NCBI RefSeq assembly: GCF_000142905.1
Contig: NW_013657598.1
Coordinates: forward strand, 1 to 14,204
Direction: 5' to 3'
Source of the DNA: Thecamonas trahens ATCC 50062
Lineage: Eukaryota > Protista > Apusomonadida
DNA length: 14,204 nucleotides
Shown here: positions 2,532 to 14,204 of the stretch, one piece after another
Position numbering within the stretch: position 1 is the stretch's first letter
Layout of the letters: each line of letters begins with the position of its first letter
The notes under the pieces: generated by a model
Told to the model about the DNA's origin: nothing
Seen by the model: only the letters and a program-made list of their open reading frames with translations
The model's database searches: none
Made by a program: the position numbers and the translations under genes

Positions 2532-4175
2532 ATGGCCAAGGATCTCGGCCGTGCTCTGCGTGAGCTGAATGAGATTCTGGTCGTTCTGGGCAAGCCGCCC
2601 ATGGACGGACCTGTTCTTCCAGACGCTCTGGATTCCAGCAGTGATACCACTTCTTCCACAGGTGCTGGTTTGGTTGGAGACAACCATGTGACCGCTACGG
2701 ATGGGCCCGGCCATGCTGATGCTGACGAGGCAGGCGAAGATGGTTCTGGTCGTGATGATGGCTCTGTTCATGCTGTGGACAGCCTCGACGCCCTGGTTCT
2801 TGAAGAGGCGGCTGCGCAGGTGGCCCGTGCGGCGGTGGCGGCGCGCAAGGCGGTGGCCTCGGTCGAGCCGGACCTGGCGCAGATCGTCAAGCTGTATGAC
2901 GAGCGGGCGCAGAACGCGGTCAAGGTGATCCAGCTCGCCAGCGAGCTGCAGGTGGCCCGGATCGAGGTCGAGGCCCAGGCCAAGTTGAAGGACAAGGCCG
3001 AGCGCGCGGCCGAGGCCGAGGCCCAGTTGCGGACGAGGGCCGAGAACGAGGCCGCCGAGCTGTCGTCGCGGCTGAGCGAGGCATACACCCACATCAAGAC
3101 GATGGAGGCCGAGAAAGACGCGCTGCAGCGCCGGGTCGGCGAGCTCTCGGCCGCCATGCCGCAGAACGAGTCCGAGCGCGAGGCGCTGGCTGAACAGCTT
3201 GCTGAGCTGCAGGGTGAGCTCGAGGAGGCCAAGCAGTGGCAGCCGTCGGGCATCGCCCAGTCGGTGCTTTCAGGCATGTGGTGGACGGCCAAGTCGGCAT
3301 TTCAGCTCGCCTCGGACGGCATGGGGCAGATCAAGAACAAGACTCGGTCCAAGCCGGGTGTGTACACCCGTTACGAGACCCTACAGATGGAGACCATCCA
3401 GCGGTACTACGCCCGCCACATCACCTCGGAGCTGCCGGACATTCTCCAGACGCTTGTCGACGATGCCGGCCTCTTCCGCGCCGCCACCGCGCCTGCCCAC
3501 ATCCCCACCACTCAGGACTACCGATTTGCCGAGTGGTCTCACAAGATCGGCGCCGGCTTTCTCGCAGGCGTCGCCCGCAGCCTGGTCAAGAAGGTCTGTG
3601 AGTATCAGGCCGAGCGCGCAGGTCGCTACTTTGGTATCACCGGCTGCGGCTACGTCGACGACCCGACCAACCTCGTTCTTCGCGAGCTCAAGGACTGGCT
3701 TGTCGTGCTCTCCTCGTGCGACAAGACCGAGCGGACTCGTCTCGACATTGATGCCCGCTGCGCCTTTCTCGACGAGCTCATTGACAACAACGTTTTTCAG
3801 TCGTCCGGCCGCTCTACCACCACTATGACCGGCATGCTCGCCGGCGTCCGCACCGAGCTTGCCTTTGTTCGCGATCACTACGATGACGACGAGGCCCTCG
3901 ACCTTGAGCAGTTTGAGCTCCTCGCCGACGCCATGGCCTCGGACATGGGTGCATCGACAGGCTCCATGGCCCGCTCCGTCGCCGCCTCCTCCTCTGGCCT
4001 CGACCTTGCCCGCTCCTCGGCCGGCGTCAGGCTCCCGCGCGATGTCGCCGCCTCGGCCGCCTCGCTCTCCATGGACCCTCGTCCTCCCGCCGAGAGCCAC
4101 ACCACCAACAGCGGCGGCGGCAGCAACAACGACGACGACGACGACGACGACTTTGGCTTCCAGATCCTCAGCTGA
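2532..4175 (+). CDS. Coiled-coil protein (547 aa) with an uncharacterised C-terminal helical domain and an acidic tail; paralog of 4487-6043
   Basis: ATG in good context (aaccATGg) and strong C/G third-position bias. E/A/K/Q/L heptad region at about aa 110-235. The C-terminal domain aligns with the next gene (YYARHITSELP, VCEYQAERAGRYFG, DDPTNLVLRELKDWL). Confidence 0.9.
   Translation: MAKDLGRALRELNEILVVLGKPPMDGPVLPDALDSSSDTTSSTGAGLVGDNHVTATDGPGHADADEAGEDGSGRDDGSVHAVDSLDALVLEEAAAQVARAAVAARKAVASVEPDLAQIVKLYDERAQNAVKVIQLASELQVARIEVEAQAKLKDKAERAAEAEAQLRTRAENEAAELSSRLSEAYTHIKTMEAEKDALQRRVGELSAAMPQNESEREALAEQLAELQGELEEAKQWQPSGIAQSVLSGMWWTAKSAFQLASDGMGQIKNKTRSKPGVYTRYETLQMETIQRYYARHITSELPDILQTLVDDAGLFRAATAPAHIPTTQDYRFAEWSHKIGAGFLAGVARSLVKKVCEYQAERAGRYFGITGCGYVDDPTNLVLRELKDWLVVLSSCDKTERTRLDIDARCAFLDELIDNNVFQSSGRSTTTMTGMLAGVRTELAFVRDHYDDDEALDLEQFELLADAMASDMGASTGSMARSVAASSSGLDLARSSAGVRLPRDVAASAASLSMDPRPPAESHTTNSGGGSNNDDDDDDDFGFQILS
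4131..4151 (+). repeat. (GAC)7 coding trinucleotide repeat (poly-Asp)
   Basis: gacgacgacgacgacgacgac in frame, just before the terminal FGFQILS. Confidence 0.9.
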
Positions 4176-4438
4176 TATGTGGCAACTCCTCTTCCTCCCC
4201 CCTCACGCACGCGTGTGTATGGGCCGAGATCCAATGAACTAACAGTCTCACCCGACCAGCAATCACTGTTGCATCAAGTGCGACAGAACGATGGCCATTC
4301 GGGTTGTCGCCAACGAATCGAACACCTGTGCCATCGACTCCATGGAACACCGCCGAACGAAGACGCCCACCGACGGCACAGACTCACCCGCCACGCCCAT
4401 CACCGCACACCGCATACACAAAGCACAACTCCTCTCCC

Positions 4439-4471
4439 ACATATACATACACACATACATACACACATACA
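4439..4471 (+). repeat. Degenerate ACATAC/CA repeat about 15 nt upstream of ATG 4487
   Basis: acatatacatacacacatacatacacacataca seen directly. Confidence 0.8.
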
Positions 4472-4486
4472 ATCCTTCCCTCTCCT

Positions 4487-6043
4487 ATGGCTCACAGGGT
4501 GATCGATGTGTGCCGGGCGCAGGGCGAGGAGGAGAGCAAGCCGACCGTCGACGACGCGACCAGGACGACAGGCATGCTCATCGCGGCTGCGCTGACAAGC
4601 CTCCGCAGTTTGGATGCGGCGCTGAATGAGGTAGAGCGACCGAGCTTTGTCGCGGCAGAGGCGGCCAATGCTGCTGGTGCTCAGCTGGCGCAGTATGCGA
4701 ACGACGCCGACGATGCCGAGGCCCAAGCCATGGCCGGTGCTGCCGAGGCCATTGCCGCTGGTGGCGTGCCGGTCGTCATGGCGCTCGCCGCCGCCCTCGC
4801 CCGGGTCGCCGCCTCCACTCCGGTCCGCACCGGGGGCCGCAGGCGGTTGGCCGGCTCGCGATCGGGCGCATCCCCGATGCTGGCCCAGGAGAACAGGATG
4901 CTGCTGGCCCAGGTGGAGACGCTCAACAACGAGTACAAGCTCATGGCAGCCCACGCCGACGAGGTCGAGCGCCATCGCGACTCACTCGAGGCCGAGTTGC
5001 GCTCGGCGCGGGAGCGGGCAGACGCGGCAGAGGCCGCGGCGGCGGTGGCAGCTGCAGACGCGCAGGCTGCCAAGGCCGAGGCCCACGCCCACGCCACGGA
5101 AGCGGGAGCGGGAGCAGGAGGGCATCCGGCGGACGATCCCGACTCGCTGGTGCATGTGGTCGATCCCCAGCTGAACGAAGCGTCGAACATTGCGCGCATT
5201 CTCGACTGCCACAAGGCGATGCTCGCGGCACGGCATGCCACGATCGACGGGCTCGCCGAGCAGAACCGGGCGCTCCATGAGGAGGTCGACGCGCTTCGGG
5301 AGGCGCTGGCGGCGGCGGCGGCCGGTGTTTTTCCAGGAGAGACAAGCGGGCCGGGCGACGACGACAGCGCGAGTCTTGTCGTGTGGCTCTCAGATGCGGC
5401 GGCAAGCGTGGCGTCTGCGGCGAGTTCGGCTGGCTCTGCGCTGGGGCGGATGCTCGACGATGTGGCGAACCGGCGGCTGCTGTCGTCAAACGCGCTAGCG
5501 GAGCGCGAGCTGCAGCAGATGCGGACGGTGCATCTCAACTACGGGCGGCACGTGTCGTCGATGCTGCCGCGACAGCTCGAGCTGGAGCCGGTGGCCGAAG
5601 GTTCGAATGAGGTGACGGCAGTGTGCTCGGTGCCAGCCAAAGCGATGTGTGTCGCGTACTGGGTCGGCGACGCAAGCGAGCAGCGGCGGAGGTCGGCGTT
5701 TGCGTCGACGGTTGTGGAGGCCATAGCCGTGGTGTGTCGATACCAGGAGGCGCGGAGCAAGCGGGCGTTTGGGACGGCGTACCCGAACGATCCGACGAAC
5801 CTGGTGTGCTTTGAGCTCAACTCGTGGCTCTCGTCGCTGCTCTCGGTCGAAGTGTACACGACCGAGATTGCCGAGGCACTCGTGGCACGGCGCAAGTACC
5901 TGCTTGCGCTAATCGACGCCGGCATCTTTCCGTCGCCGCGGCGGTCGTCGTCGATGGCCGACACGCTGCGGATCGTGGCGCTACAGTTGGCGGCGCTGAG
6001 CGCGGTTCTCGATGCGGAGCCTGGCCTGCTTGCGCGTATTTAG
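4487..6043 (+). CDS. Coiled-coil protein (518 aa) with the same uncharacterised C-terminal domain; paralog of 2532-4175
   Basis: First ATG (MAHRV) at 4487. The track's upstream extension from 4304 runs through an ACATAC repeat and is probably UTR. Coiled-coil segments (LAQENRMLLAQVETLNNEY, LAEQNRALHEEVDALREAL) precede the domain NYGRHVSSMLP...VCRYQEARSKRAFG...NDPTNLVCFELNSWL. Confidence 0.88.
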   Translation: MAHRVIDVCRAQGEEESKPTVDDATRTTGMLIAAALTSLRSLDAALNEVERPSFVAAEAANAAGAQLAQYANDADDAEAQAMAGAAEAIAAGGVPVVMALAAALARVAASTPVRTGGRRRLAGSRSGASPMLAQENRMLLAQVETLNNEYKLMAAHADEVERHRDSLEAELRSARERADAAEAAAAVAAADAQAAKAEAHAHATEAGAGAGGHPADDPDSLVHVVDPQLNEASNIARILDCHKAMLAARHATIDGLAEQNRALHEEVDALREALAAAAAGVFPGETSGPGDDDSASLVVWLSDAAASVASAASSAGSALGRMLDDVANRRLLSSNALAERELQQMRTVHLNYGRHVSSMLPRQLELEPVAEGSNEVTAVCSVPAKAMCVAYWVGDASEQRRRSAFASTVVEAIAVVCRYQEARSKRAFGTAYPNDPTNLVCFELNSWLSSLLSVEVYTTEIAEALVARRKYLLALIDAGIFPSPRRSSSMADTLRIVALQLAALSAVLDAEPGLLARI

Positions 6044-7471: not shown

Positions 7472-7571
7472 NNNNNNNNNNNNNNNNNNNNNNNNNNNNN
7501 NNNNNNNNNNNNNNNNNNNNNNNNNNNNNNNNNNNNNNNNNNNNNNNNNNNNNNNNNNNNNNNNNNNNNNN
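7472..7571. other. Assembly gap (100 N, probably an unknown-length placeholder)
   Basis: Run of exactly 100 N. Confidence 0.99.
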
Positions 7572-7812
7572 TGGTGCAGGTAGTGCGACTTGGAGGACGA
7601 GTTTACAGAGGATGGGATGGAGGGGATGGAGTTGAAGGAGTGCGGTAAATAGGGGAGGACCGATCATGGCCTGGTTCCTGACAAGAGGGTGTGGGTGTGA
7701 TTGGGGTGGCAGAGACCAGGGATGAGTAGAGCACCGGGAGCCAGCGGGTGCGAGTGGTGACAGTCACCAAGCTCGGGGCAAAGGCAGATGGTGTGGAAGG
7801 TGGCGGGTGGGA

Positions 7813-8466
7813 TCAGGAGCGATGGCCTGTTGTGGCGGTCGGCTGCTGGAGGAGCGGGTTGTCGAGGCGGACGCGGACGAGCTCGATGACGTCGTCCGGA
7901 ATGACCGAGCCGTCAACGAGGAAGAACTTGTGGACAAAGGAGCCATTGACGCGGAGCCACCATGCGTGGTAGTTGTCGGCAGCATGGCCCATGACCGAGA
8001 CGACGGCCGAGAATCGGCGGCCTTCCGCTTCTGCCGGTGCCTCTAGCAACTGGAGCTCCGGATGGGCCATGTTGAGGCAAGTAAAGAGCTCAGTGACCGA
8101 GAGCTTTGACCGGGGGGTGGAGACCCACGAGGCGAGCGAGGACTCGGACGAGTCGACCCGCTCCATTGATGTTGTTGTGCTCTTCGGAGACGATGACAAG
8201 CCCGGTGATCTTGGTGAGCCTGGTGAGCCGTGCGTGTCTCCGGAGAGGAGGCTGGCAGAGCCACCCGCCGCAGTGACTGCGGTGGCTGCCGGTGGTGGTG
8301 CGAGGTTGGCCGACGACGGCGCGAGGGCAAAGGAGACGGGCGTGGAGGAAGGCGAGAGGAGGACTTCGAGGGCATACCCGCGCTGCACCGTGGAGTAGTA
8401 GTGCTTGGGCAGTTGCCGCTTGGGTGAGGCAGGCAGCTGCGGCTTGCGTGACGAGCCACAGCCCAT
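7813..8466 (-). CDS. MGCxxS dual-acylated protein with a C-terminal DUF4430/transcobalamin-C-like beta-grasp domain, copy 1 (217 aa)
   Basis: ATG at 8466 in a perfect gccgccATGg context gives MGCGSS. A Ser/Pro-rich linker is followed by SVTELFTCLNMAHPEL...AVVSVMGHAADNYHAWWLRVNG...VIPDDVIELVRV. Confidence 0.82.
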   Translation of the reverse strand: MGCGSSRKPQLPASPKRQLPKHYYSTVQRGYALEVLLSPSSTPVSFALAPSSANLAPPPAATAVTAAGGSASLLSGDTHGSPGSPRSPGLSSSPKSTTTSMERVDSSESSLASWVSTPRSKLSVTELFTCLNMAHPELQLLEAPAEAEGRRFSAVVSVMGHAADNYHAWWLRVNGSFVHKFFLVDGSVIPDDVIELVRVRLDNPLLQQPTATTGHRS

Positions 8467-8814
8467 GGCGGCAGTCGGGTGTACCCCTGCCACGGCAATG
8501 CGGAGGATGACGCGACTCGCCCATTCTGACCCACTTTCGATTGGCAAAACTGCTCCTCCCGGCACGCGTGGGTTGCATGTCGTTGCGAGAGTGGGTTTGT
8601 TTTCCGTCGAGGTCGGCTTTGGGGATCGAGGCTCGCTGACTATGGTTCTTTTTCAAGGAGATGGTGCTGTGCCAGAGGCGAGGGATGGGGCAGCGTACAT
8701 GCTGGCTCGTGGAAGAGGCTGCGCGATAGCGATGACGAGGGGAGGGCGCGCGGAAGAGGTGCGGCAGTTTGTTGTAGTTGCAAAGATGGCTCCACCACCG
8801 GGTCAGGTCGGATC

Positions 8815-8858
8815 ATTGGCCCAATAGTCTGTTTCCCAATTTCGCCTCCAATCACGTG
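8815..8858. promoter_or_regulatory. CCAAT-box cluster with an overlapping CACGTG E-box, upstream of the 7813-8466 gene
   Basis: ATTGG at 8815, CCAAT at 8821, 8836 and 8848, and CCAATCACGTG at 8848-8858, all in an intergenic region. Function is inferred from NF-Y/bHLH consensus motifs only. Confidence 0.4.
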
Positions 8859-9051
8859 GTCTCCTAGTTGGACGCAGTCCAGGGAGGCAATCACCGGAGT
8901 TGTGACGATCGTAATTGCCTCCCTAGACTCTGGCAACGTACTCGAACAAGCAACGGTGGTCCCGCCGTGGACGAAAGCTATGCGTTTTGTAGTGAAATCT
9001 GTCTGATGGTCGCGCGTGGTCCGGGCGCGCTCCAAGCGCGGTACGTATGGG

Positions 9052-10014
9052 CTAGATCGCGTAGGTGGGCGTCTGGGTGCTCCACGTTTTCAGCCTTGTG
9101 TCCGCGGCTGAACGTGAGTAGACCGAGGTAGAAACAGGCATGGCCGGGTTGGCTTGGCAGATGTGGTTGTCGGACAAGGCGTGCGAGAGTGGCTCGATGC
9201 TGCCCGCTTGACTGCTGTGCGGCGTGGTGGGTGGTGACGGGCGCTGAGCAACAACTATGTCCGAGTGCTTCCGCGGCGACGGCGTGAGCAAGCCAGCTGA
9301 AGTGCTCTCTGTACGGGTACTTGCCAGATTGGGCTGGATGGCGGTGATGATGTCGGCCCGGGTTGGGCGAGTGCTGAAGCGGACGACAGACAGGGCCGCC
9401 CGCGGCACAAGGGCGAGTTCGAGCACATCACCAGGCATGACCGACCGACAGGTCGCGGCCTTGTGAACGCCATGCATCTCCATGCCGTTGAGCGAGAGGC
9501 GCCACCCTTGCTCGGCGCAACTCCCCCATCCACCAGCAGAGATGACGGCGGCGACCGGCTCGGGAGATGGCAGCTCGACGTCAGCCGCGCCAACGTGAAT
9601 GTCATTGCAGTTTGTGACTGCCTGCATCGCCTGTTGCCGCCATCCCCCCGCTGAGTGTAGGCACCACTCGGTGCCGAGGTTGATGTCGAGGTCGGGATGA
9701 AGAACAGCGAGGGCAGCGATGACGCCCAGTGGCGTGATGCGACCCTGGAAGAACCAGGCGCCAGATTCGGCATTGCGCTCGGCAACGATGTCATGTAGCG
9801 CATCGACTTCTGATGCTAGCTCGTACCTGGCCTCGTCGGGGCCAAAGCTAATGACGATGGTGAGACTGGTCAGCGTTGACTCGGCAGCCGCGAGGCATGG
9901 GTTTGGCGAAACGGCATTGGCCGATTTCGCTTCGTGGTCACGATGAAGTGGTGCGGCATGGACAATGATGTGCCGGCCACCAACATCCGCAGAGCGTGAC
10001 GAGCTGCACCCCAT
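9052..10014 (-). CDS. MGCxxS dual-acylated protein with a DUF4430-like beta-grasp domain, copy 2 (320 aa)
   Basis: Starts MGCSSS. Domain ITPLGVIAALAVLHPDL...AAVISAGG...QGWRLSLNG...VMPGDVLELALVP, followed by a Ser/Thr/Pro-rich tail. Confidence 0.82.
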   Translation of the reverse strand: MGCSSSRSADVGGRHIIVHAAPLHRDHEAKSANAVSPNPCLAAAESTLTSLTIVISFGPDEARYELASEVDALHDIVAERNAESGAWFFQGRITPLGVIAALAVLHPDLDINLGTEWCLHSAGGWRQQAMQAVTNCNDIHVGAADVELPSPEPVAAVISAGGWGSCAEQGWRLSLNGMEMHGVHKAATCRSVMPGDVLELALVPRAALSVVRFSTRPTRADIITAIQPNLASTRTESTSAGLLTPSPRKHSDIVVAQRPSPPTTPHSSQAGSIEPLSHALSDNHICQANPAMPVSTSVYSRSAADTRLKTWSTQTPTYAI

Positions 10015-10206
10015 TCGAGGACGTCCGTGGGCCGACGGAGCTGGGCACGAGGTGCTTGGATGGCTCCGTCAAAGTGAACTGTGCGATGGCTCTGAGGTGC
10101 GGATGCGGCAGTCCGTCACCTGACCCGATGGACGGCAAAACGTAAGTGTGGCCAAAAAGGTACGTTTTTTACACGACTCCTTATCTGCCAAACCTTTTTT
10201 CTCGCT

Positions 10207-11211
10207 TCACATCGACGAGTACGGCCCGCTCAAGGCCGGGGTGGGCGACGGCGTTGAGGCCAGCTCCGAGTCGCACAAAGCGAAATGAGCCTGGTTGACC
10301 AGCATATTCGCCTCGTCGAACAAAGATGCGATGTCGAGATACGGGCTCGGAGTGTCGGTCGGCGAAATGGTGGTTGGGGCGCGCGGGACGGCGCGAACGG
10401 TAGCGTCGGCGCCAAAGCACACACGGCTGGTCGTGTCACAATCTGGCACAACGTCGTCTGACATCATCGACCGATTGGTTGGAAACTCGCAGGTGCGTGA
10501 ACCTGCCGGCGACGATGTGCCTGCTGAGGGATAGCAGCTTGAGTCAGACATGTGCGGGAGGCGCGGGCAGGCGAACGTGCGCGGGCGCCGAAGCGAGGAG
10601 CGAGCGACAAAGACGAGCTCGATGACGTCACCCGAAAAGACATCGTTGAGCGCGACTTCGGCCAGCTCGCACTCGATGCCGTTGAGCAACATGCGCCAAG
10701 CATGGCTCTCATCGGCACAAACGTTGTTGATGGCGGTGACCGCGGCGATCGGGCGGGCAACCTTGTTGTAGACGGGGGGCAACCACTCCGACTTTTGACT
10801 GATGACCAGATCACCATATTTGACCTGAACAGCGTTAAGCAAGTTGCCGACAGTCATAGAGTAGACCAAGCCCGAGCTCTCGGTGTCAACGCCGGGGTAT
10901 TCGGCTCCGGAGAAGGGGACGAGGCGACCGTGGCAACTCTTGAACGCGGCCGTGTCAGAGGTGCGGGTGTAGGCGGTCAAACCATTTCTCGCTTGAAAAG
11001 GCCTTGACCGTTCGTTTGACAGGTTAAAATCTGCGTATTCCGGACAAAGAACGTACCCGCTCGGCAGGCGGCGGGTAGAGTAGTCGACACGGACCACGAG
11101 GGGCTTGCTAGCGAGCGTGGACATGCGCGATGTCACGACTTGTGGCCCCACTAGGCGGGGCAGAGTCTCGAGCTTGGAAGGCAATGTGTTGCGGGACGTG
11201 CCACACCCCAT
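10207..11211 (-). CDS. MGCxxS dual-acylated protein with a DUF4430-like beta-grasp domain, copy 3 (334 aa)
   Basis: ATG at 11211 (caccATGg) gives MGCGTS, and there is an in-frame upstream ATG at 11280. Domain MTVGNLLNAVQVKYGDL...AAVTAINNVCADESHAWRMLLNG...VFSGDVIELVFV. Confidence 0.82.
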   Translation of the reverse strand: MGCGTSRNTLPSKLETLPRLVGPQVVTSRMSTLASKPLVVRVDYSTRRLPSGYVLCPEYADFNLSNERSRPFQARNGLTAYTRTSDTAAFKSCHGRLVPFSGAEYPGVDTESSGLVYSMTVGNLLNAVQVKYGDLVISQKSEWLPPVYNKVARPIAAVTAINNVCADESHAWRMLLNGIECELAEVALNDVFSGDVIELVFVARSSLRRPRTFACPRLPHMSDSSCYPSAGTSSPAGSRTCEFPTNRSMMSDDVVPDCDTTSRVCFGADATVRAVPRAPTTISPTDTPSPYLDIASLFDEANMLVNQAHFALCDSELASTPSPTPALSGPYSSM

Positions 11212-11343
11212 GGTGTTTTCACAGCAAGAGGAGGTGGGAAGAAAAGTGGCTCGCGAACTACGGTAAAGGTGGTCGGACATGGCTCACGTTTGCTACCGAG
11301 ACCGGATGCCGTCGTTTCGCCATTACGTGAAAAAGGAGAGCAA

Positions 11344-11949
11344 TCAATCACAGACGCTCCCACCGAGTGTTGGCGGGCAGCGCGGCCGGCCAGGAACCCG
11401 CACCAGTTGGATGTCGTCAAGGGCGGTGACGTGGCCGAGGGCAACGCGAGCGTAGTCAACACGCACGCCATTGATCCGCAGCATCCACTTGGCGGTTGGG
11501 GTGGACGGTAGGCCGGCGACGGCGACAATGGTCGCGGCGCAAGTGCTCATCTCGCGGTCCCACACGGTGGCCTCGACGAGACCCAATTTGGGGAACTCAC
11601 TGGCAAAAATAGCCAGCAAGTCGGATACGGTCACCCGCAGCACGCCAGAGTCATCATAGTATGCATCCGTGGCGGTTGGTGTGATCGCGAGTGTGGCCCG
11701 CGCAGAGAGGGTAGCCAGAAGGGAGACAGCCGAAGGCGAGGAGATGAGGTCTTCAGCGGGAATTGAGCCTGGCAGAACGCCCGTCCCCAACTGCCTCACT
11801 CGCTCGAGAGAAAGTGTCACGTCGAGCATGGGCCGACTGCCGCAAATGTCGACCACATGGAGAACAAAGTCCGTCGTGCCAGGAGCAGACTCTCTGACTC
11901 TAACCGTACCGGGTGGTTCTGCAACTGGACGGGATGCGCCACATCCCAT
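11344..11949 (-). CDS. MGCxxS dual-acylated protein with a DUF4430-like beta-grasp domain, copy 4 (201 aa)
   Basis: First ATG at 11949 gives MGCGAS. Domain VTVSDLLAIFASEFPKL...ATIVAVAGLPSTPTAKWMLRING...VTALDDIQLVRV. Confidence 0.82.
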   Translation of the reverse strand: MGCGASRPVAEPPGTVRVRESAPGTTDFVLHVVDICGSRPMLDVTLSLERVRQLGTGVLPGSIPAEDLISSPSAVSLLATLSARATLAITPTATDAYYDDSGVLRVTVSDLLAIFASEFPKLGLVEATVWDREMSTCAATIVAVAGLPSTPTAKWMLRINGVRVDYARVALGHVTALDDIQLVRVPGRPRCPPTLGGSVCD

Positions 11950-12230
11950 ATTGCACAGCTGTGAGAGGTGTTTCTGGTTGCTGTAGCGAGCCTTGACCTC
12001 TACAAATCCCGCAGCCAATCAAAACAAAAGGTACGTTCTTGGCTCGTGTTGCCGGGGCGGTGAGAGCGGGCCTTGTCCCACACGCCATGCGTGATTGGTG
12101 GTTGGCGCAAGAGTGCTGTCGACTGCTATCAGCCAAGCACTCGACAGCCGCCACGCGGAGGTAGACTAGAGTCAACTAGGCAATCAGTGGCTCGTGGAGG
12201 CTCCAAAGTGGTCTCATTGCCGACGGCGGC

Positions 12231-13898
12231 TCAATCGGCGGTGAGGACGGCGAGCAGGTCGGTGACGGCCGGTCGGTCCGAAGGCTCCTGGGCCCAGCAT
12301 GAGGTCATGAGTTCGTGGAGCGGGTGACTGAGGCTCAAGGCGGCTGATGAAGGGCGCCGACCGTCGGTAACAATAGCAAAGATGACGGCGAGCGGATCCG
12401 AGCCGGCAAACGGCGGCTCGCGGGCGCCGAGAAAGTAAAGCAGCATGCCAAAGGCGTAGATATCGACAGCGGCGCCGTACGGCTTGCCGGCAAGAATCTC
12501 TGGCGCCATGTACGCAGGCGTCCCGATTCGAGTCTGAGCCGAGCTCTCGGCGTCGGCCATCCGGCGCGAGATGCCAAAGTCGCAGAGGACCGCCCGGCCG
12601 TGCTCGTCGACCAGCACGTTGCCGGGCTTCAGATCACGGTGGATGATCGGCGGCGACGCGAGGTGCAGGTGGGCGAGGCCCGAGGCAATGTCCCGTGCTG
12701 TCCGCACTAGCGCCGCGCCCTCGCAGCAGAGCTCGGGAACAGCAGCGACAGCCTGCGCGAGGTTGTACGGCAGGTACGGCATGACAAGAAATGGCCGCTC
12801 CGCCGACGAGCACACACCAAGACATGCCACGATGTTGGGATGGCGCAGCTTGAGCAGAAGCGCCACTTCCGAGTAGAAGACCTGAAGCGTGGCGGCAGAG
12901 ACCTTGTGCAACCGCTTGACCGCCACCGGTGTCCCACGCCACCGGCCGCGCTTGACCTCGCCAAACGTGCCCATGCCCAACGGCTCGCCCAGCTCCAGCT
13001 CGAGCGGCTGGATCTCCCACTGCGCAAGCAGCGCCTGCTTGGCAGCGCGCTCGGCGGCAGTGTCCATCCGTAACCGCGCCTTGCGGCCCACACCAGCCGC
13101 GCCCTCCTGCGCTCTGCAACCACCGTCGTCGTCATTGGAGCTCTCTGCCGCGCTTGCCGAGTCGCTCGTGCAAGCCACTGCCGTCTTAAACGCCGATGGC
13201 GGCGCAGTGAAGCTGCCGTCAAGCGGCTCGGTCGCCGATGACGACGACGCAGAGCAGGCCGCTGGTCTTTCCGTCACAACCTCGGTGAGCGAGCTCGTCG
13301 CCGAGCCCGACTCTGGGCCAGAGTGAGAATTCGAGGCGGTGCCCACGGCCTGGGTTGCGTCGTCGGACGACTCGGATTCGCCGCGCCCGTCGCTGCCGGC
13401 TTCGTGTGGATGCCAGAACATGGCAGCGTGCCGCAGATTCTTGCGCCAGCGGTAGCACGACGTACCGTACCGACACACGCGGCGCTTGGCGCTCGGGGCG
13501 CGCGAGCATGCAACATCGTCGTCGTCCCCGCTGCCTCCTGCCGCCGCCCGCCGCCGCTTCAAGCTCGGTGGCGGCTGGCTTGCCTCGATCCGCACCGTAA
13601 GCAGCGGTGCACCACGGACAAGTCGGACGCCATCGCCGTCGGTCAGGCAGACGGCCGCCCCAGCCGCCAGTCGCGACACAGCCGCCGCCGCCGCCATCGT
13701 CACTTCCGCCGCATTGGCGCCGAGTTGGTGGAGCTCAAGCGCGCCGGCAACCGCATCAAAGCTCAGTCGCACCTGCCGCCGAGAGCACCGTCGCGCAGCG
13801 TCGCCGGCGGCCGGGCCACGGCCCAGAACAGTAATACCGGGAGGCAGCGGAACCCTCAGGCCACCAGCGCCCTCTAGCCAAGCCACGTGAGTCGTCAT
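12231..13898 (-). CDS. FHA (APLF/PNKP/aprataxin type) - PBZ zinc finger - TKL-group protein kinase (555 aa)
   Basis: First ATG at 13898. FHA: VLGRGP...RCSRRQV...LHQLGAN...LTDGDGVRL. PBZ: CRYGTSCYRWRKNLRHAAMFWH (13410-13475). The kinase has all catalytic motifs: GMGTFGEV, VAVK, alphaC Glu (FYSEV), HRDLKPGN, DFG, GTPAYMAPE, DIYAFG, CWAQEPSDRP, plus the TKL-type WEI...GRWRGTPVAVK start. Confidence 0.93.
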   Translation of the reverse strand: MTTHVAWLEGAGGLRVPLPPGITVLGRGPAAGDAARRCSRRQVRLSFDAVAGALELHQLGANAAEVTMAAAAAVSRLAAGAAVCLTDGDGVRLVRGAPLLTVRIEASQPPPSLKRRRAAAGGSGDDDDVACSRAPSAKRRVCRYGTSCYRWRKNLRHAAMFWHPHEAGSDGRGESESSDDATQAVGTASNSHSGPESGSATSSLTEVVTERPAACSASSSSATEPLDGSFTAPPSAFKTAVACTSDSASAAESSNDDDGGCRAQEGAAGVGRKARLRMDTAAERAAKQALLAQWEIQPLELELGEPLGMGTFGEVKRGRWRGTPVAVKRLHKVSAATLQVFYSEVALLLKLRHPNIVACLGVCSSAERPFLVMPYLPYNLAQAVAAVPELCCEGAALVRTARDIASGLAHLHLASPPIIHRDLKPGNVLVDEHGRAVLCDFGISRRMADAESSAQTRIGTPAYMAPEILAGKPYGAAVDIYAFGMLLYFLGAREPPFAGSDPLAVIFAIVTDGRRPSSAALSLSHPLHELMTSCWAQEPSDRPAVTDLLAVLTAD

Positions 13899-14204
13899 GT
13901 GGATTGTGGCGGGCAACAGATCCGTGGCGGGGAGTGATCAGTCTCGGGCTCCTCCGATCCAACCACCGCTGGACTGTATCAGATCAACGATCTGCGTGGT
14001 CGTCTCACTTCCTCTCTTCTCCGCTCAGTCTCCTTTGTGTGCGGCACAAACTGCGAGCTAGGCACTTGCGCCCACAATGACTACGACGTATCGTCAGACA
14101 AGAGTCAGGACGACAGTCGCGTGCGCCGTGCACCTCGCCAAGCTCCCTCGAGTAGAAGGAGGAGCAACGGTCGTCAAGCTATAGGGAAGGAGGGATGGGG
14201 GGGA

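Follow-up and report, generated by a model that had tools for sequence, protein, structure and literature searches.

The first 14,204 nucleotides of contig NW_013657598.1 from the bacteria-eating apusomonad flagellate Thecamonas trahens ATCC 50062 (RefSeq assembly GCF_000142905.1), referred to here as the window, raise the question of what is encoded by four consecutive minus-strand genes, A to D, that share a start of the form MGC[GS][STA]SR and one common domain. The DNA of the window is gene-dense and eukaryotic, with a GC content of ~60-70%. The answer that appears most probable, with the balance tilted moderately towards it, is that the four genes belong to a seven-member, lineage-restricted family of acylated, membrane-tethered proteins in which a transcobalamin-type SLBB beta-grasp would capture or hand over a small ligand. 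The genes and their predicted domains are arranged in the window as follows.

7813-8466, minus strand: gene A, 217 aa, starting MGCGSSR with its ATG at 8464-8466
7864-8376, minus strand: predicted SLBB domain of gene A, core at 7864-8109 and beta1-beta2 hairpin near 8311-8376, with a disordered Ser/Pro-rich insert between them
9052-10014, minus strand: gene B, 320 aa, starting MGCSSSR; the ATG at 10012-10014 also opens the open reading frame (ORF)
9400-9864, minus strand: predicted SLBB domain of gene B, core at 9400-9741
10207-11211, minus strand: gene C, 334 aa counted from MGCGTSR, ATG at 11209-11211
10600-11100, minus strand: predicted SLBB domain of gene C, core at 10600-10863
11344-11949, minus strand: gene D, 201 aa, starting MGCGASR with its ATG at 11947-11949
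11389-11868, minus strand: predicted SLBB domain of gene D, core at 11389-11640, modelled directly

In a mechanical list of ORFs three of the four MGC starts are internal to longer ORFs. The ORF around A begins with GTG and that around D with TTG, so that for both genes the MGC codon is the first ATG. Within the array only gene C has an in-frame ATG upstream of its MGC start, 23 codons away (11278-11280). A first-pass annotation of the window had already reported the four MGC starts, three of them inside longer ORF calls, and had delimited four cores; the starts are all where it placed them and the core boundaries given above agree with its own. The domain of gene B is distinguished by an additional ~28-residue insertion, at about 9520-9670, within the hairpin region that follows the helix.

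When a profile of the four genes is run against the 28.7-Mb genome, exactly seven loci are found: the four in the window, E and F in tandem on contig 42, and a single copy (G, publicly AMSG_03654) on contig 13. Paralogs E, F and G all start MGCGSSR, and across the seven copies M1, G2, C3, S6 and R7 are invariant, together with the L, W, N-G, D, L and V positions of the C-terminal core. The cores are 24-44% identical between copies, which points to old duplications, and the proteins outside the MGC motif are 20-30% identical. The idea that the family had expanded in place tells part of the story, as the seven paralogs occupy three loci (4 + 2 + 1) and have relatives in uncultured marine eukaryotes. 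Nor is the remainder of the proteins beyond the core unalignable, as had first been thought, since the seven-paralog alignment contains a conserved upstream beta1-beta2 hairpin (phi-x-phi-x-phi ... P ... phi-x-phi), located 25-90 residues before the core, and the domain is correspondingly longer. The gap between hairpin and core is filled by a variable, low-complexity, disordered insert, and in both of the structure models described below the hairpin packs into the same domain. Most copies end in disordered Ser/Thr/Pro-rich tails. The family is undescribed, as had been suggested, and narrowly distributed: its public records read 'hypothetical protein', it has no Pfam match, and its MGC starts are mostly hidden by the gene models.

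The common domain has been modelled twice. Model 1, an AlphaFold2 model of paralog F made from the seven-sequence domain alignment (predicted local distance difference test score, pLDDT, 81.5; predicted template modelling score, pTM, 0.73), has the element order beta1, beta2, disordered insert, helix, two-strand hairpin, beta3, beta4 and beta5, in which strands 67-73 and 78-86 come after helix 50-60. Model 2, of gene D (maa2121732b2c; pLDDT 78.9), contains helix 81-91 followed by strands 98-103 and 110-117. A Foldseek search of the PDB with model 1 places rat, human and bovine transcobalamin (TC), the bacterial DUF4430 structure 3u7z, intrinsic factor (IF) and haptocorrin (HC) at the top with a probability of 1.00, and MoaD, ThiS and SAMP entries at E > 0.1. 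With VIA-align the same model superimposes on all 15 TC, IF, HC and DUF4430 entries at Z 10.4-11.9 and a root-mean-square deviation of 2.3-2.6 A over 90-95 residues, after which there is a step down to Z 8.0 or less for SAMP1, MoaD and Urm1. An exhaustive comparison of model 2 with 48,161 representative chains returns IF (10.8), TC (10.7), HC (10.7), the isolated TC-beta (10.2) and 3u7z (9.4), and the sixth-best chain has a Z of 6.5. The models thus align with 90-100 residues of the TC and IF beta domains, and, for two models and three search methods, the closest structural neighbours lie in the TC clade at Z 9.4-11.9 against 8.0 or less for the others. In an ESM Atlas shape search the six rows listed, each standing for one family set of the 30 nearest models, comprise DUF4430, transcobalamin-2 and unnamed small bacterial clusters, with no other named fold among those six; the Atlas feature and structure search with paralog G was uninformative, its Atlas model having a pLDDT of 0.34.

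Both features that define the TC-like clade, a beta-hairpin following the helix and two conserved glycines, are present in the Thecamonas family. The glycine before beta3 lies within S-x-x-G in six of the seven paralogs (C has Asn), the glycine of N-G is found in all seven, and the two align to the I-G-G and V-N-G of DUF4430. A beta-grasp of the transcobalamin/DUF4430 type had been proposed at the outset, with a best match to MoaD or ubiquitin and the absence of a transcobalamin-type hairpin named as the outcome that would speak against it; both models match the TC clade best and the hairpin is there. Judged from these models and alignments, it is very likely that the domain has the SLBB fold and is homologous to the transcobalamin/DUF4430 clade. 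The proteins could instead be sulfur carriers similar to MoaD, ThiS and Urm1, or ubiquitin-like modifiers: the general beta-grasp fold does match SAMP1, MoaD, CysO and Urm1 at Z 5-8, and D carries an LGG, 13 residues past the domain. MoaD and ThiS, however, have no post-helix hairpin and their Z scores are clearly below those of the TC clade, whilst GG occurs in D only and not at the domain end, the other six paralogs having long unrelated tails or none with GG, and a carrier or modifier role is extremely improbable. A di-glycine (MoaD-like) tail for D was rejected, as it is not conserved among the paralogs, and a kinetoplastid origin with SMP-1/HASPB-like proteins, which GC content and CA repeats had suggested, was dropped, the genome being that of Thecamonas and the fold that of SLBB.

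The family hidden Markov model (HMM), searched exhaustively against 1.84 billion representative proteins, gives 13 matches. Five are Thecamonas paralogs or their strain variants, three are Ig-like or other repeat-domain proteins, and two are bacterial, each containing five DUF4430 repeats; in one of these there are SLH domains and a prenyltransferase-like alpha/alpha toroid as well, the bacterial transcobalamin-like architecture. The remaining three, P0009, P0010 and P0020, are small single-domain proteins. The multi-DUF4430 matches are sums of weak 5-13-bit repeats, and since unrelated Ig-repeat proteins reach similar E-values by the same summing these matches on their own are weak evidence. 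A comparison of profiles with hhalign, for which the two bacterial proteins supplied ten DUF4430 repeats that were set against a ten-sequence family alignment, yields a probability of 95.6% and an E of 1.3e-8 over the C-terminal 46 columns, the shared pattern being I-x-S-I-x-G ... W-x-L-x-V-N-G ... P-x-D-x-I-x-L-x-Y. Among 31 controls, with columns either reversed or shuffled, the best reaches E 0.027.

P0009, a bacterial lipoprotein with the lipobox LTGC, is the closest bacterial relative of the Thecamonas family and itself falls below the Pfam threshold. It is encoded in a metagenome operon (L015:2543-7003) that contains, in order, a DUF4430 lipoprotein, a 924-aa protein combining DUF4430 with a squalene-cyclase-like toroid, P0009 and a DUF6580 membrane protein, and in which no cobalamin riboswitch was detected. 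P0010 (157 aa, start MGCGSSSS) comes from compact GC-rich eukaryotic contigs in Tara Oceans and other marine metagenomes, where it neighbours an ESCO gene whose product is 39% identical to Thecamonas ESCO, with no synteny. P0020 (151 aa, start MWCCGTRQKK) is found on other eukaryotic contigs. In a small tree the family and these three proteins split from canonical DUF4430 with support of 97/96 and the MGC-bearing sequences group together with 91/94, the inner branches being unresolved. No relatives were found of P0009 among genome contigs or of P0010 among metagenome contigs, the alignment being too diverged for a pattern search, and a word-indexed homologue search with D, later with a 10-sequence profile, produced nothing new.

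The second shared element is the N-terminus. N-myristoylation (PROSITE PS00008) calls for Gly2, a position 3 that is not charged, aromatic or Pro, one of S/T/A/G/C/N at position 6 and a residue other than Pro at position 7, with Cys3 serving for palmitate. The starts MGC[GS][STA]SR of all seven paralogs and MGCGSSSS of P0010 fit this rule, and genes for NMT and about 24 DHHC proteins are present. When the genome is scanned with a degenerate DNA pattern for MGCG-S/T-S-R there are 23 matches, against 0 for the reversed control, and the full heptapeptide MGCGSSR is found in at least 18 ORFs of Thecamonas; as the codons differ between the loci, the conservation is at the level of the protein. Thirteen ORFs from outside the family (loci L017-L029) open with exactly MGCGSSR or MGCGTSR, and include ankyrin-repeat, cyclic nucleotide monophosphate (cNMP)-binding, IQ-motif and leucine-rich-repeat (LRR) proteins. 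By contig and position these are:

C3:426313, C5:453428, C10:392180, C10:574007, C23:340846, C25:127917, C25:276400
C29:401983, C30:359630, C40:179086, C43:233843, C48:222943, C54:106296

The whole heptapeptide, beyond G2 and C3, looks like a general cytosolic membrane-targeting signal that is reused in Thecamonas. The first-pass annotation had read MGCxxS as a signature for myristoylation and palmitoylation, and the fit of all seven paralogs, the presence of NMT and DHHC proteins and the occurrence of the heptapeptide on cytosolic-type proteins bear it out. Together with hydrophilic N-termini in which no signal peptide is found, and with no clear transmembrane segment in the family proteins, they make an anchor at the cytosolic face of a membrane likely, the acylation and topology being inferred from sequence. 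In paralog E (L007:1126-2205) the tail contains an Ala/Val/Ser-rich hydrophobic stretch at residues ~304-322, with a Kyte-Doolittle 19-residue mean of 1.73, which is the only borderline transmembrane-like segment of the family.

The opposite topology would follow if the proteins were secreted or surface-exposed, in the manner of bacterial DUF4430 proteins and animal transcobalamins, and the MGC were incidental or not the true start. Nearly all known TC-like SLBB proteins have signal peptides (PMC1796856), and C and F have upstream in-frame ATGs at which the public models begin. Against such an arrangement, the proteins have no hydrophobic N-terminal segment, whether read from the MGC or in their extended versions, the MGC is the first ATG in five of the seven paralogs, and M1, G2, C3, S6 and R7 are invariant where the upstream sequence is unrelated. 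Moreover, P0010 is represented by two contigs with an identical coding sequence that diverge exactly upstream of the MGC ATG into unrelated sequence, and the same heptapeptide heads cytosolic-type domains. Secretion is very improbable.

The public gene models differ from the structures given here. AMSG_11456 (492 aa) splices B onto A by way of a predicted intron, and A, D, E and F with their MGC starts are absent from a 15-billion-protein collection. Near-identical sequence does occur in metatranscriptomes of six studies, and RNA contigs from four runs were aligned to 7700-12100. One contig of 1003 nt matches 9021-10023 with 0 differences and contains all of B unspliced, from 31 nt past the stop codon to 9 nt before the ATG; other contigs of gene B reach to 10 nt and to 29 nt upstream of its ATG. 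Gene A is covered at 7802-7956 and 8203-8371 and gene C at 10291-10879 and 10934-11202, whereas D and the intergenic spacers have no RNA contig in the four runs. Because B is seen unspliced and with its own stop codon, four separate genes are favoured over the public fusion, and A and B are probably separate. Within B and C the window differs from the environmental RNA contigs at seven single bases (9308, 9524, 10543, 10589, 10770, 10773 and 11075), of which six are non-synonymous, a proportion that may reflect weak constraint, selection that is relaxed or diversifying, or errors in contigs of low depth.

The GC-rich setting, in which long spurious ORFs are common, and the lack of an RNA contig or database entry for D could suggest that the array consists of chance ORFs, decaying pseudogenes or bacterial contamination. 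Seven intact paralogs nevertheless retain both the motif and the fold-determining residues, the models are confident, RNA contigs lie over genes and not over spacers, the flanking genes (encoding an FHA-PBZ kinase and an LRR protein) are eukaryotic, and near-identical variants of the family occur in independent environmental assemblies. An artefactual or decaying array is therefore scarcely credible.

What the folded module might hold is considered against the background of vitamin B12. The Thecamonas genome contains MetH, methylmalonyl-CoA mutase and MMADHC, and no match to MetE in a search whose control worked, so that the organism very probably depends on B12 from its prey. MMACHC was not found in the genome either, in a search whose control was silent, which leaves this negative unverified. 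A corrinoid role is plausible in this context, though the context does not count as evidence for one. On its own, the beta domain of human TC can bind both cobalamin and cobinamide (PMC5599065), and the interface between cobalamin and the beta domain measures ~560 A2 (PMC11107200); hence a stand-alone domain of this type could in principle hold a corrinoid. Considered on its own, a small-ligand function is somewhat favoured by the analysis, and a corrinoid would be the leading candidate, plausible but speculative and on the doubtful side.

The same fold and anchor may alternatively serve without any small molecule, as a protein-protein adaptor that brings partners to a membrane, with the Ser/Thr/Pro tails acting as phospho-regulated linkers. 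Beta-grasp domains are often adaptors (UBX, RA, PB1, ubiquitin-like), the other MGCGSSR ORFs are of signalling type (ankyrin, cNMP-binding, IQ and LRR), and long disordered tails are present in most copies; fast divergence with mostly non-synonymous strain differences, and a toroid partner that was not found in a search with a silent control, also suit an adaptor. On the other side, the models are 2.4-4.3 Z units nearer to the ligand-binding TC/DUF4430 clade than to any beta-grasp of the adaptor or sulfur-carrier kind, and the best-conserved parts, namely the hairpin, W-x-L-x-x-N-G and G-D-x-I, are those common to DUF4430. An adaptor role is unlikely, if still deserving of serious weight.

The proposal of an acylated SLBB protein that handles a small ligand can be set out as a sequence of steps. 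NMT would place myristate on Gly2 and a DHHC enzyme palmitate on Cys3, and this dual acylation would hold the protein at a membrane's cytosolic face. After the signal come 27-67 residues of linker and then one folded module, which in most copies is succeeded by the disordered Ser/Thr/Pro-rich tail. The module is taken to be a diverged transcobalamin-type SLBB beta-grasp in which the disordered insert parts the beta1-beta2 hairpin from the helix, hairpin and beta3-5. As the domain in transcobalamin cradles a small ligand, the module here would most likely capture or hand over a soluble small ligand, with a corrinoid the first choice, at the cytosolic membrane surface.

A number of results weigh against this proposal. 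Pfam scans of the seven paralogs give no relevant model even at E 10, none of them reaches the gathering score of 23.8 bits for DUF4430 (PF14478), and a six-frame scan of the genome for DUF4430 gives nothing at E 1; an HMM search of PDB sequences likewise has 0 matches at E 10. The two models are built on shallow alignments of 7 and 10 sequences, and the multi-DUF4430 matches are the summed repeats described above. Acylation is predicted, and C and F have their upstream ATGs. Gene D is absent from protein collections in any form, as well as from the RNA contigs, and those contigs neither map 5' ends nor settle where transcripts stop or whether a spliced form exists; the preponderance of non-synonymous strain differences belongs here too. 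Neither a transcobalamin alpha domain nor another alpha/alpha-toroid partner (Cobalamin_bind) was found in the genome, where again the search control was silent. Since the contacts of TC-like SLBB domains to B12 are mostly with the backbone (PMC1796856), residue conservation is no guide to corrinoid binding.

A more far-reaching scenario, quite improbable as it stands, links the family to its bacterial relative. An apusomonad ancestor or a related marine protist would have acquired from its prey a gene for a lipoprotein-type SLBB domain similar to P0009, from a DUF4430/toroid uptake operon. The signal peptide would then have been lost and the lipobox ...GC-G turned into an MGCG dual-acylation start, moving the B12-binding cradle from the exterior of a bacterial membrane to the cytosolic face of eukaryotic membranes, phago-lysosomal or flagellar. 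The paralogs might there receive corrinoids leaving food vacuoles, as a non-animal cytosolic B12 escort able to replace MMACHC, which was not detected in the search with the silent control.

A few other features of the window may be recorded. The array is flanked by eukaryotic genes, for an FHA-PBZ kinase and an LRR protein; the first of these (12231-13916, minus strand) is a 561-aa ORF with Pfam matches to FHA_2 (E 3.8e-7), a PBZ zinc finger (E 5.2e-5) and a protein kinase domain (E 6.3e-50). The 12-mer AAAAGGTACGTT is identical at 10155-10166 and 12026-12037, with a chance expectation of 0.01, and its copies lie ~141 nt upstream of the ATG of B and ~77 nt upstream of that of D; it may be a shared promoter or 5'-untranslated-region element. 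An assembly gap of 100 N occupies 7472-7571, 240 bp downstream of the stop codon of gene A, and 2532-6043 on the plus strand contains two adjoining coiled-coil ORFs of 547 and 579 aa, without a convincing Pfam match.

The SLBB superfamily and its transcobalamin-like clade were defined by Burroughs et al., 2007 (PMC1796856), who described the transcobalamin-type domains as extracellular corrinoid scavengers of Gram-positive bacteria that were acquired once by animals. Members of the clade are mostly secreted, the cytoplasmic prokaryotic versions are fused to winged helix-turn-helix (wHTH) domains, and animals were the only eukaryotes in which the clade had been seen (PMC1796856). The Thecamonas proteins, whose host is a protist near the lineage of animals and fungi and whose fold is turned to the cytosolic side by a predicted lipid anchor, would be a second, independent family among eukaryotes, and would extend the known range of this ligand-binding fold as well as its uses in the cell. 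Should the ligand be a corrinoid, the family would offer a handle on how B12-dependent phagotrophic protists move the vitamin out of food vacuoles; whatever the ligand, the MGCGSSR heptapeptide provides a testable membrane-targeting code for Thecamonas. The public gene models are also corrected with respect to the fusion of B and A, the hidden start codons and the unannotated gene D. New for the superfamily is the combination of a dual-acylation signal, a split TC-like SLBB domain and a disordered tail, with a predicted cytosolic topology.

In comparison with the SLBB domains of transcobalamin and intrinsic factor, the Thecamonas proteins share the post-helix beta-hairpin, the two glycines and the patterns W-x-hydrophobic...N-G and G-D/E-x-I-x-L, and match the beta domains at Z 10.2-11.9 over ~95 of ~100 residues. 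Unlike transcobalamin, they have neither an alpha/alpha-toroid in the same protein nor a signal peptide, they occur in a non-animal host, their topology is predicted to be cytosolic and lipid-anchored, and a disordered insert of 25-90 residues separates beta2 from the helix. The prokaryotic intracellular fusions of TC-like SLBB to ArsR or AraC wHTH domains (PMC1796856) provide a precedent for the use of this domain as a cytoplasmic ligand sensor. Those fusions are soluble one-component transcription factors, whereas the Thecamonas proteins have no DNA-binding domain and are predicted to be tethered to a membrane.

The bacterial DUF4430 proteins (PF14478), which include RUMGNA_00854 (3u7z) and multi-repeat S-layer or sortase-anchored forms, have the same fold at Z 9.4-10.4, and the relative P0009 is encoded in a DUF4430 operon and is itself lipid-anchored through a lipobox. 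In contrast, the Thecamonas family is eukaryotic, falls below the Pfam threshold and forms a separate branch (97/96), and its predicted anchor is a cytosolic N-myristoyl/S-palmitoyl group in place of an extracellular diacylglyceryl-Cys. Finally, dually acylated proteins of the SH4 type with MGC N-termini include the Src-family kinases Lck and Fyn and the G-alpha i/o subunits. The Thecamonas proteins resemble them in beginning with Met-Gly-Cys, in having residues 6 and 7 that are small and basic respectively, and in placing a hydrophilic linker ahead of the folded domain, but carry an SLBB beta-grasp as the cargo. The recurrence of MGCGSSR in so many ORFs of one genome, unlike the SH4 systems, suggests an organism-specific targeting code.

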